Positions 23,101 through 26,100 of a stretch of DNA of 64,000 nt are shown here, one piece after another (within the stretch, counting starts at the first letter, position 1; each line of letters opens with the position of its first letter). The notes beneath the pieces are model-generated. The model was not told where the DNA came from and made no database searches. It saw only the letters and a program-made list of their open reading frames with translations. Origin of the DNA: Salpingoeca rosetta (taxonomy: Eukaryota; Protista; Choanoflagellata); NCBI GenBank assembly GCA_033442325.1, contig JAWQFM010000003.1, positions 2,310,385-2,374,384 of the forward strand. The letters run 5' to 3'. A program made the position numbers and the translations under genes.

Positions 23101-26100
23101 CGCTGTCCACGGTTGGTGGAAACACGACACGCGATTGGCTCGTGCCGTAGTTGAACGCAGCGACCTTCACATTCTGCTGCTCAATGATAAAAGATGAGTT
23201 GGCCGGCAGCGCGCGGGAAATGCTGCCCAGCGCCGTTGCAAACGCAGACGGTAGCGACGCAGACGAGCCGCTCTGTTGTCGCAACCACATGGCGGTGCAC
23301 GGCAGTGCGTGAGAGAAGCACACATTCAGATGTTTGGCGCGTGGGTTGTGTGTGTATGTGTGTGTTTGAGTTAGGGAGCGAGACATGCAAAGGCTCAAGT
23401 TTGGGAAACATACACGCACAAGCACGCATGCGTCGCTCACTTCACTCATTTTCGCTCTTTATCGCACCTCAGCTCAAATTCACAAATACACACACACACA
23501 CACACACACACACACACACGAACAAACGCAAACAAAGCGCAAACACAACATACAATGGCACTTACACTGGTGATGTTGGCTTCAGCAGATTTGAGGGCTG
23601 CACTCGGCGCAGCAAGCATGTTGCTGATTGTCGATGTCAGACTCGTGGTGATGTTCCTCACGCTCTCCTCGGAGAGCGACGCGTTCAGCACGCGGCTCAC
23701 AGACCCAATCACGTTCACAACCGCCTTGACATCCTCAGCGCCCATAAACTCTGTTGTTGTCGTCTCCTGGCTCAGGCTCGTTGCCACCTGCGCAACGTTC
23801 GTCGGGCTCAACGCCTCCGTCGCCAGCTCCAACAGGCGGTCGTTCCTGCACGCGGTGCTGTTGACGGCTCCAAGCACATTCAGCTTCGTGCATGTGCGCG
23901 TCGCAACAAGCGGGCGGGAGGTTGATGGACACTGCACACTCGACACCGCGTTGCAGCCAACAACCGCGGGCCACGTCACCCCGTTAAGGACTTCGCTTGG
24001 GCAGCTGCACTTGGACTTCTTGGGCGCAGTGGTGGTCGTCGGCACGGGCGTGGTGGTCGTGGTGGCAACAGCGGCAACGCTGCTGCTTGGAGGTCCGCTG
24101 CCTATTGCCGTGTGTGCCTTCACCTGCACAGTGTACGCGTACCCCGCACGCAGGTTCGCCAGCGTGTACGATGGTGAAGTGGAGTGATGCGCAGCACCAA
24201 CGCACTTGCCGCTCACACACGCGTCAAATGCGGTCGTGCTGTCGCTGTCGTCGCACGGCAGCCCGTCGGGCTCGTCCACTGGGGTGCAGACGCCAAATAG
24301 GCAGGTGTTCTCGGCAGCGCATTCCAACTCGGCGCATTGCACGTTGTCACAGAGATCAAACGCATCTGCCGTCTGGTAAAACACCTCAATGTTGCTCAGG
24401 GAAATGTTGCTGTCGCCAGCAAGCCACGTGTTTGTGTATGCGCCCGTGGTGATGCTGAAAGAGTCCACGGTTGCTGTCCCTGTTTGGCAGTCTGCGCCCA
24501 GCACCAAATCGTCCCCTTTCAATGTGTGCAATGTTGAATGTGTTGTGCATGTGTGCGTTGCATGTATGTTTGTACGTGTGTATGTATGTGTGTGTGTGTT
24601 TGGTGAGGCAGGTGGAGATGGCACAGGGCACACATAGTGACTGTACCACATTATGCATTCTCACCTCAACTCAAACCGCAAGTGCTTGAGTGAGCACACA
24701 GACACACAGACGAACACACACACACACACACACAGAGGCACACCCTCATACTTATACATAAACACAAACACACATGCACACACGCAACACACGCTCGCCC
24801 TTTCTCCTTTGCCGCACCAAACGAAGGGCACAACGACGACTCCGTGCGAATTGCGGCGGTGCCTTCCTGCAACTGCGTGTCTGTTCGGTATGCGCTGCCG
24901 TTGACAATGGTGAAGAGAAACGCGTATGGATCAAGCTGGTACGTATCGCCACTCGCGCTCCACGACAGTGACGTGAACCCGCCAAACACGCGACCTGTCC
25001 TGGTGTGCCTGGCTACGACAAGCGTCACACCCTTGTCGTCACACTGCGCGTGGAATGTTGCAGCGCTGAATCCGTGAGCACTTCCAGAGTAGCAGCGGTG
25101 GAAATAGCGGTTTGGAAGCAGCGCCGAGAGCGCCTTGTTGTTACTGTCGTCCAGGATGGCAGAGCCGACAACGAGAGAAGGCGATCCAAATGCTGACGGA
25201 AAGTACACGTTGTCGCTCAGAATCGGGTAGCAGTGTACGGTGGTGCTGTTGCCGCTGCTCACGCAAATGTCCCGTCCTTGGAACGAGGTGGTGTAGATGG
25301 GGTGGGGCACGGTAAACTTGAGGTTGTCGTAAGCGCCCGAACTCAGGTCATACCTGGTAGCATAAGCAATGGCAGCGAAAGCAATAATGTGAGTATAGGT
25401 TGCACTTTGGTGCATGAGACTGTGGGATATCGGGTACAACCAAAACCACCAACAAGCATTCAGAGACGTATTCACGTAAACACACGCACACACACATGTA
25501 TCTACAGACACAGCGAACACATGTGTCCACACACACACACACACACACACACACACACAAAACACACGACATACATGCACACAAAACACACGACATACAT
25601 GCACACAAACAACCACACATGACACATACATGACACACACAGGCACCACGATCGCTTGCGCAACCGCACCTGTAGAATGTGTTGTCGAGAGCATCACCAC
25701 GATAGAGCTTGCCGTTGATGGCCACAAGACCACCGAGAAGAAATCCAAATGCGTCTCCACCAGCACCACTCAGCTGTAGGGTTTGTTGCAGCGAGCCATC
25801 GACTGCGCTCAGGACGTACACGATGTCTCCAGCCACGCCCATGGCATACACGCTCGCGCCGTCAGCTGTGACGCCACCAACACCACTTGGCATCGCGTAG
25901 GACCACACAAGCTCGTGATCCGGCCACGTCGCCTTGAGAATCTGCGTGTTTGACGCAAGGTAGTAGGTCTCTGACGCAAAGTCGCTCCACAGCTGCACAA
26001 CACAGCCCGCAAAGGCAACTGGCGTGAAGGATCCAAGAACATCCCCATGAACGTTCATGCGTTGTACGGTTGTTCCGCAGTACCCAGGATACCTGTGCAG

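Follow-up and report, generated by a model that had tools for sequence, protein, structure and literature searches.

A complete TLDc domain in the predicted ectodomain of a chimeric adhesion-type G-protein-coupled receptor of Salpingoeca rosetta

A stretch of 64,000 nucleotides (nt) of the choanoflagellate Salpingoeca rosetta (assembly GCA_033442325.1, contig JAWQFM010000003.1, positions 2,310,385 to 2,374,384 of the forward strand; hereafter the window, to which all nucleotide positions refer) raises the question of whether a TLDc domain can form part of the outside of a G-protein-coupled receptor (GPCR), and how it came to be there. An original prediction, made from the letters of the window, had placed such a domain in the extracellular region of a GPCR. 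To our knowledge, the TLDc proteins studied so far are all cytosolic. In mammals, each of the five TLDc proteins binds the V-ATPase (PMC8608904), and TLDc function is explained through this binding in that paper and in the abstracts of others. The results of our analysis showed that the gene concerned, PTSG_09376, encodes an adhesion-type GPCR with a genuine and complete TLDc domain. The best explanation of the locus as a whole, which we consider probable, is an adhesion GPCR with an extracellular TLDc domain, formed as a chimera with a multidomain cassette and bearing a propeller-TLDc binding head.

We searched the exons singly, and the full-length analyses were done on the public protein. 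Among 1.84 billion representative proteins, the best match of the TLDc-bearing exon was a protein of 1894 amino acids (aa; P0001), the hypothetical protein PTSG_09376 of S. rosetta (XP_004989632.1, F2UMG0). When spliced, it maps onto the window exactly, as a minus-strand gene of 13 exons between 29309 and 20190 with GT-AG borders at 12 of 12 introns.

Comparison of this protein with Pfam showed a TLD domain (PF07534) at aa 874-1035, with an E value of 2e-18 and a score of 67.4 bits (cut-off 24.5), covering positions 4-167 of the 170 positions of the profile; the profile search by which the original prediction was to be checked thus gave a significant match. The domain was also found when the open frame 24669-25769 of the minus strand (E 5.5e-15 and 56 bits, at the same cut-off) or exon 6 alone (E 4.2e-15, 56.5 bits) was searched, and in a six-frame scan of the organism's own genome (55.4 Mb, 68 contigs), where TLD matched at the PTSG_09376 TLDc with an E value of 3.9e-14. 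The 56-aa C-terminal TLDc piece of exon 7 had no Pfam match when searched alone, this piece being too short. In a sequence search of the Protein Data Bank (PDB), exon 6 matched the TLDc domains of mEAK-7 (E 1.9e-4) and zebrafish OXR2. The AlphaFold2 (AF2) model of exon 6, which holds three quarters of the domain, had a predicted local distance difference test score (pLDDT) above 90 across its TLDc part, and 12 of the 12 matches listed down to rank 13 in a Foldseek search of the PDB with this model were TLDc structures (probability 0.99-1.00), among them mEAK7, OXR2, NCOA7, Oxr1 and Skywalker/TBC1D24. The clusters of the ESM Atlas nearest to the domain were all TLDc as well.

The domain retains the TLDc hallmarks (G905, F911, H912, C915, D916, FGG 934-936, W942, FLF 956-958, P987, FG 989-990, D992 and E1033). 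We aligned 283 TLDc domains drawn from the 150 nearest proteins, which are the best 150 of 5292 relatives, and the family-wide residues of this alignment (GxS loop, FHxxCD, FGG, W, FLF, PxFG and ExEV) were all found in PTSG_09376. Its domain has the same Pfam family (PF07534) and the same fold as the characterised TLDc proteins (OXR1, NCOA7, TBC1D24/Skywalker, mEAK7/TLDC1 and TLDC2, and Oxr1 and Rtc5 of yeast), and the retained Gly, Phe, Trp and Glu include, by motif correspondence, positions whose mutation disrupts folding or V-ATPase binding of NCOA7 (PMC8608904). It is distant from mEAK7 (E 2e-4) when compared with its own clade (1e-40 to 1e-100).

The interval first assigned to the domain, 24375-25165, was right within a base: aa 874 starts at 25166 and Y1036, the end of EVFY, ends at 24376 on the minus strand. 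The claim of a full TLDc signature stood as to completeness, by Pfam. The frame is not continuous but split by an intron (24817-24516); the spliced motif, CPSFGDDLVLG, has one G and not two. The donor of this intron lies at the same position and in the same phase at five S. rosetta paralogue loci. The lengths of exon 6 (536 nt), of exon 7 (950 nt) and of both summed are not divisible by three, so that these exons cannot be skipped in frame, singly or jointly.

The C-terminal part of the protein is a receptor module of the adhesion type. Pfam found a GPS motif at aa 1473-1519 (E 1.7e-9), with its four Cys present and with HL/T followed by TNFA, and a 7tm_2 domain at aa 1532-1768 (E 4.7e-42, profile positions 3-250 of 250); the first transmembrane (TM) segment, TM1, begins about 15 residues past the GPS. 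An open-frame Pfam search of the same strand downstream of the TLDc domain gave both domains as well (GPS, E 2.6e-10; 7tm_2, E 9.6e-23). The matches of this region in the PDB were ADGRL3 (E 6e-53) and ADGRD1 (E 6.5e-52), the closest solved adhesion GPCRs, with which PTSG_09376 shares the HL/T of the GPS, the tethered-agonist-like TNFA and the full 7tm_2 domain. Cleavage at the GPS would be expected from this sequence. Upstream of the module, the N-terminal region holds a signal-like start, FN3, Cys-rich and propeller-like modules and the TLDc domain. Large multidomain N-terminal fragments, which arise by domain shuffling, are described for choanoflagellate adhesion GPCRs in the main text of their catalogue (PMC12716839), and PTSG_09376 agrees with them in this respect.

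This arrangement bears directly on the side of the membrane on which the domain lies. Before the seven-transmembrane (7TM) domain is reached, a Kyte-Doolittle scan showed only two segments of strong hydrophobicity, one at aa 14-32 after a basic stretch and the other at aa 535-553, the latter a moderately hydrophobic strand within a propeller module. Because the TLDc domain stands between the N-terminal signal sequence and the GPS/7TM, in the standard N-out topology of GPCRs, it is predicted to be extracellular or lumenal and displayed at the surface; the placement N-terminal to the GPS/7TM given by the original prediction was borne out, since all these parts belong to the same polypeptide behind a predicted signal sequence. 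The ectodomain has 36 Cys in local groups of even size (8, 2, 2, 2, 4, 8, 6 and 4), as expected for disulfides, which we infer to be present. Within the TLDc domain there are four Cys (898, 915, 986 and 999) and two sequons (N962 in NGS and N1026 in NIS), so that two Cys pairs and two sequons are added here to what the characterised TLDc proteins have. The extra Cys and the NGS and NIS sequons had been read as consistent with the secretory pathway; they are indeed there, but we rejected the sequons, of which the 1479 extracellular residues hold 14, as meaningful evidence and regard them as weakly suggestive at most. The characterised TLDc proteins reside in the cytosol and there bind the V-ATPase through its V1 sector, whereas the domain of PTSG_09376 is predicted to lie in a GPCR ectodomain behind a signal sequence. 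A V-ATPase role like that of OXR1, NCOA7, TBC1D24 and mEAK7 would be topologically excluded for this domain, because the V1 sector is cytosolic.

Comparison of PTSG_09376 with its paralogues showed the protein to be chimeric, with two ancestries. Its TLDc domain belongs to a cassette with the collinear order FN3 half, Cys module, two propeller-like modules, TLDc, Cys module and FN3 half. The cassette occurs once in PTSG_06573 and twice in PTSG_13098, and a Microstomoeca roanoka protein of 4500 aa, derived from a transcript, has three copies of it; identity per segment is 34-53%, and an intron position is common. The propeller-like modules of PTSG_09376 match each other and those of the paralogues, which score PQQ_2 in Pfam. 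Identity to PTSG_13098 is 42% over aa 90-1059, and identity to PTSG_06956 (P0155; 1077 aa, G000:C15:1109926-1111001) is 50% over aa 1130-1848 (744 residues). PTSG_06956 has only GPS and 7tm_2 and no TLDc. PTSG_09376 is thus composed of a cassette part, akin to PTSG_13098 and PTSG_06573, and of a GAIN/GPS/7TM part akin to PTSG_06956, and the two meet at about aa 1060-1130, within exon 7. The paralogue PTSG_06956 is the closest to the GAIN-7TM half; its N-terminus is short and poor in domains, and it may be similar to the receptor prior to the gain of the cassette.

The cassette paralogues have signal peptides and end in more FN3 repeats, and in the Microstomoeca protein, which has a signal peptide and a single C-terminal TM segment, in TNFR repeats together with that segment; unlike PTSG_09376, they have no GAIN/7TM and would therefore be secreted or type-I proteins, not G-protein-coupled receptors. 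Since the cassette occurs with signal peptides in these non-GPCR proteins, the predicted extracellular setting of its TLDc domain is a family trait older than the fusion, and the GPCR took up the cassette whole. The FN3 part-matches at aa 291-338 (about 27760-27620) and aa 1098-1146 (24046-24192) flank the whole cassette, collinear in all paralogues, and are arranged as though insertion of the cassette had split one FN3 domain.

A protein that is chimeric between two paralogue families is also what would be seen if a cassette gene and a GPCR gene were neighbours, or separate transcripts, that annotation had wrongly merged, and the gene model, a product of genome annotation, has only the label 'hypothetical protein'. 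We hold such an artefact to be highly improbable. Exon 7 (24515-23566) is a single unbroken frame of 950 nt that runs from the last 46 residues of the TLDc domain to the start of the GAIN region, and this continuity makes a fusion artefact unlikely. The junction of the two ancestries falls inside this frame, where there is no stop, start context or intron; the region homologous to PTSG_06956 starts at aa 1130, also in exon 7; the exon is required for the GAIN region; and no signal sequence that could serve a separate receptor is found downstream of the cassette.

The combination of TLDc with an adhesion GPCR was found nowhere else in what we searched. The genome of S. rosetta has 14 TLD matches, of which only that of PTSG_09376 lies near GPS/7tm_2; among the best 150 of 5292 TLDc relatives PTSG_09376 was the only protein with GAIN/7TM, and among the 120 best adhesion-GPCR relatives the only one with PF07534. 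A word-index search with its TLDc domain returned this protein only, but such a search also missed paralogues of 43% identity and is uninformative on absence. Among the 79 nearest mid-sized TLDc proteins, the TLDc domain stands alone in the majority; the commonest partners are of cytosolic types (BTB, B-box), and FN3, EGF or MACPF occurs in few.

The domain nevertheless has relatives in a similar setting. In a quick maximum-likelihood tree, the cassette TLDc domains all fell in one clade, with a support of 100 in the SH-aLRT (a Shimodaira-Hasegawa-like approximate likelihood ratio test), and the domain of PTSG_09376 was sister to that of PTSG_06573 (SH-aLRT 91). Cys915 is family-wide (87% of the 283 domains), Cys898 is present in 54 domains, and the Cys986/Cys999 pair is present in 12, of which the sole one outside the cassette clade is that of P0052. 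Proteins with Cys898 tend to have N-termini that resemble signal peptides (odds ratio 8, p 2e-4), a crude measure as many of the sequences are fragments. By these features, the TLDc domain of PTSG_09376 belongs to a distinct and uncharacterised clade, marked by extra Cys, whose members would be cell-surface or secreted proteins.

The neighbouring branches of the tree hold a protein with six TLDc domains together with teneurin-type EGF and laminin-G domains, and proteins of 5400-6500 aa with lipobox-type signal peptides and arrays of the same propeller-like module. Four metagenomic giants of the latter type (P0013, P0024, P0059 and P0130) have one or two TLDc domains each beside their arrays of this module of about 220 aa; in P0097, another metagenomic giant with a lipobox-type N-terminus and propeller-like arrays, no TLDc stretch was seen. 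The gene of P0053, which has Stig1-like Cys repeats and two TLDc domains (L013:8001-11900), lies amid bacterial genes (FUR, ParA, GidB, YbeY and PhoH). P0015 (4005 aa, L002:3-12020) is a bacterial protein with at least eleven propeller-like modules and with Big_9 and cadherin-like domains, and its gene adjoins those of MerR, a fatty-acid desaturase and PRPP synthetase; it has the propeller module and no TLDc, and was rejected as a TLDc protein. The lipobox-type N-termini, and the gene neighbourhoods of P0053 and P0015, led us to take the giant TLDc proteins as bacterial. No relative was found when exon 6 was used as query against bacterial genomes.

The giant lipoproteins would, by their lipobox-type signal peptides, also lie outside the cytoplasm. 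The bacterial TLDc domains, those of the giants and of P0053, share the Cys898/Cys915 pair and fall beside the cassette clade, but they are without Cys986/Cys999, and the proteins are without the FN3 framing, the GAIN and the 7TM. A pairing of propeller and TLDc that is common to bacteria and choanoflagellates makes gene transfer between the two conceivable, whichever its direction. In view of these relatives, and of the cassette in non-GPCR proteins with signal peptides, the statement of the original prediction that this particular copy had been repurposed does not stand as worded; the ligand-binding or sensing role that it proposed for the domain is a hypothesis.

As to how such a receptor might work, the propeller-TLDc head outside the cell would form a disulfide-stabilised binding surface for a partner, which could be matrix, another cell or a bacterial surface. 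The GAIN domain would be cleaved at HL/T, as is usual for adhesion GPCRs, and force or a ligand acting on the N-terminal fragment would expose the tethered agonist, beginning TNFATL, to the 7TM domain. A wider proposal is that TLDc is also an old extracellular binding module, paired with a propeller-like domain and common to bacterial lipoproteins and choanoflagellate surface proteins, possibly by transfer between prey and predator, and that in S. rosetta this pair came to be linked to a G-protein-coupled output, with PTSG_09376 sensing a bacterial or matrix cue through its TLDc-propeller head. We put this forward tentatively and rather doubt it in that full form.

Beta-propellers are often binding modules, and recognition could lie with the propeller-like modules or with FN3, the TLDc domain being a structural or spacer element that stabilises or orients them. 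Within the clade the domain never stands alone and always follows propeller modules, the cassette passed to the GPCR in one piece, and we found no residue pattern suggesting a TLDc binding site. A functionless domain should, however, decay or vanish in some copies, and the TLDc domain matches the rest of the cassette in conservation and is conserved at least as well as the propellers among the paralogues and the Microstomoeca protein (43-47% identity, against 33-48%); its clade-specific Cys are kept, and the bacterial proteins retain it beside their propeller arrays. We therefore consider a mere passenger role unlikely.

TLDc was first named as a putative catalytic domain, and the FHxxCD motif is kept in PTSG_09376 (H912, C915 and D916), so that a surface redox sensor or enzyme, akin to the oxidation-resistance phenotypes of the OXR1 type, might also be thought of. 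We know of no TLDc domain for which a catalytic activity has been established. The published account of TLDc function, as far as the paper cited above and the abstracts of others go, is V-ATPase binding (PMC8608904), and the gain of Cys898 as a partner for Cys915 in the cell-surface clade points to a structural disulfide and not to a free reactive thiol. Such extracellular chemistry is the least credible of the explanations weighed here.

Several further points weigh against the preferred reading, that of an adhesion GPCR with an extracellular, cassette-derived TLDc domain. The topology was derived from a hydropathy scan and from context. The N-terminal hydrophobic stretch, at about 20 residues, is a long one and may serve as an anchor that is not cleaved, with the orientation of the protein unchanged. 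The Pfam GAIN model PF16489 did not match PTSG_09376 even at E values up to 5, and we infer a GAIN domain because of the GPS motif, of the homology to ADGRL3, whose alignment starts at aa 1453, and of the paralogue PTSG_06956, with which some 300 residues preceding the GPS are shared in conserved form. The gene model is that of the genome annotation, and an internal start may yield a receptor without the cassette. A ligand may be contacted by the propellers rather than by the TLDc domain. Our comparison covered the best 150 of 5292 relatives, and a GPCR with a more distant TLDc may occur elsewhere.

The features of the gene are collected in Table 1.

Table 1. Features of PTSG_09376 in the window, with the evidence for each
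Feature	Position	Strand	Evidence
Gene PTSG_09376, adhesion-type GPCR	20190..29309	-	Exact mapping of P0001, 12 GT-AG introns
Exon 1: basic n-region and hydrophobic stretch aa 14-32, putative signal peptide or signal anchor	29179..29309	-	Kyte-Doolittle
Two propeller-like modules, aa 396-860, exons 3-6, directly upstream of TLDc	25206..27588	-	Matches to each other and to paralogues
Exon 6, aa 811-990: last propeller blade and N-terminal three quarters of TLDc (from 25166)	24818..25353	-	Pfam, AF2/Foldseek
Intron 6, phase 1, 302 nt, splits TLDc after CPSF-G	24516..24817	-	GT at 24817, AG at 24517-24516
Start of exon 7: C-terminal quarter of TLDc, aa 990-1035, with Cys999 and sequon N1026	24379..24515	-	Pfam TLD to position 167/170 at aa 1035
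Rest of exon 7, same frame: Cys-rich aa 1041-1097, FN3 C-terminal half aa 1098-1146, Thr-rich linker, six-Cys module, helical GAIN start (to aa 1306)	23566..24378	-	
GPS motif, aa 1473-1519, CECTHL/TNFATL cleavage-site consensus	22345..22485	-	Pfam, genome scan, ADGRL3/ADGRD1 alignment
7TM domain, aa 1532-1768, exons 9-12	20858..22308	-	Pfam 7tm_2, PDB ADGRL3

Some other observations were made on the locus and on its paralogues. Five loci of the S. rosetta genome have a near-identical second TLDc exon of PTSG_13098-type genes (G000:C34:32900-34500, C14:1241200-1242900, C31:771400-773100, C35:741900-743600 and C30:687700-689400), each of which ends in CPEFG followed by a GT donor in the same phase; they look like a recently amplified family of cassette-protein genes. 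Introns of PTSG_09376 are rich in (CA)n/(TG)n microsatellites, as in intron 8 (22600-22830) and others, and such repeats are also seen, for example, at 26100-26500 and 29600-29850; intron 8 has in addition a long trinucleotide repeat, whose translation is poly-Cys, poly-Leu or poly-Thr according to the frame. These intron repeats give rise to many spurious long open frames. A gap of the assembly, seen as a run of N, lies at about 46620-46930, with (CA)n repeats on either side.

In the literature searched, an extracellular setting of the TLDc domain is undescribed; the original prediction had called a ligand-binding or sensing role undescribed for the fold. Full-text searches returned no paper that reports TLDc outside the cell or as part of a GPCR, and the TLDc papers that mention signal peptides included none about a secreted TLDc. 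TLD is absent from the main text of the choanoflagellate GPCR catalogue (PMC12716839), and the main text of a 2026 review of adhesion GPCRs (PMC13197933) has no mention of it. PTSG_09376 was named in no paper that the search returned; it is not Cupidon, the characterised adhesion GPCR of S. rosetta, which is PTSG_03655.

The predicted extracellular TLDc domain of PTSG_09376 is thus an unusual and undescribed context for the fold and not a one-off reinvention. If bacteria and the closest relatives of animals do have a conserved extracellular TLDc clade, the fold would have a broader interaction function that has been overlooked. PTSG_09376 also offers a clean and datable case of a new receptor, made by joining a ready-made cassette to a GAIN-7TM module within one exon. 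As S. rosetta is now genetically editable and Cupidon has already been studied there, the receptor and the role of its TLDc domain are directly testable in the organism itself.

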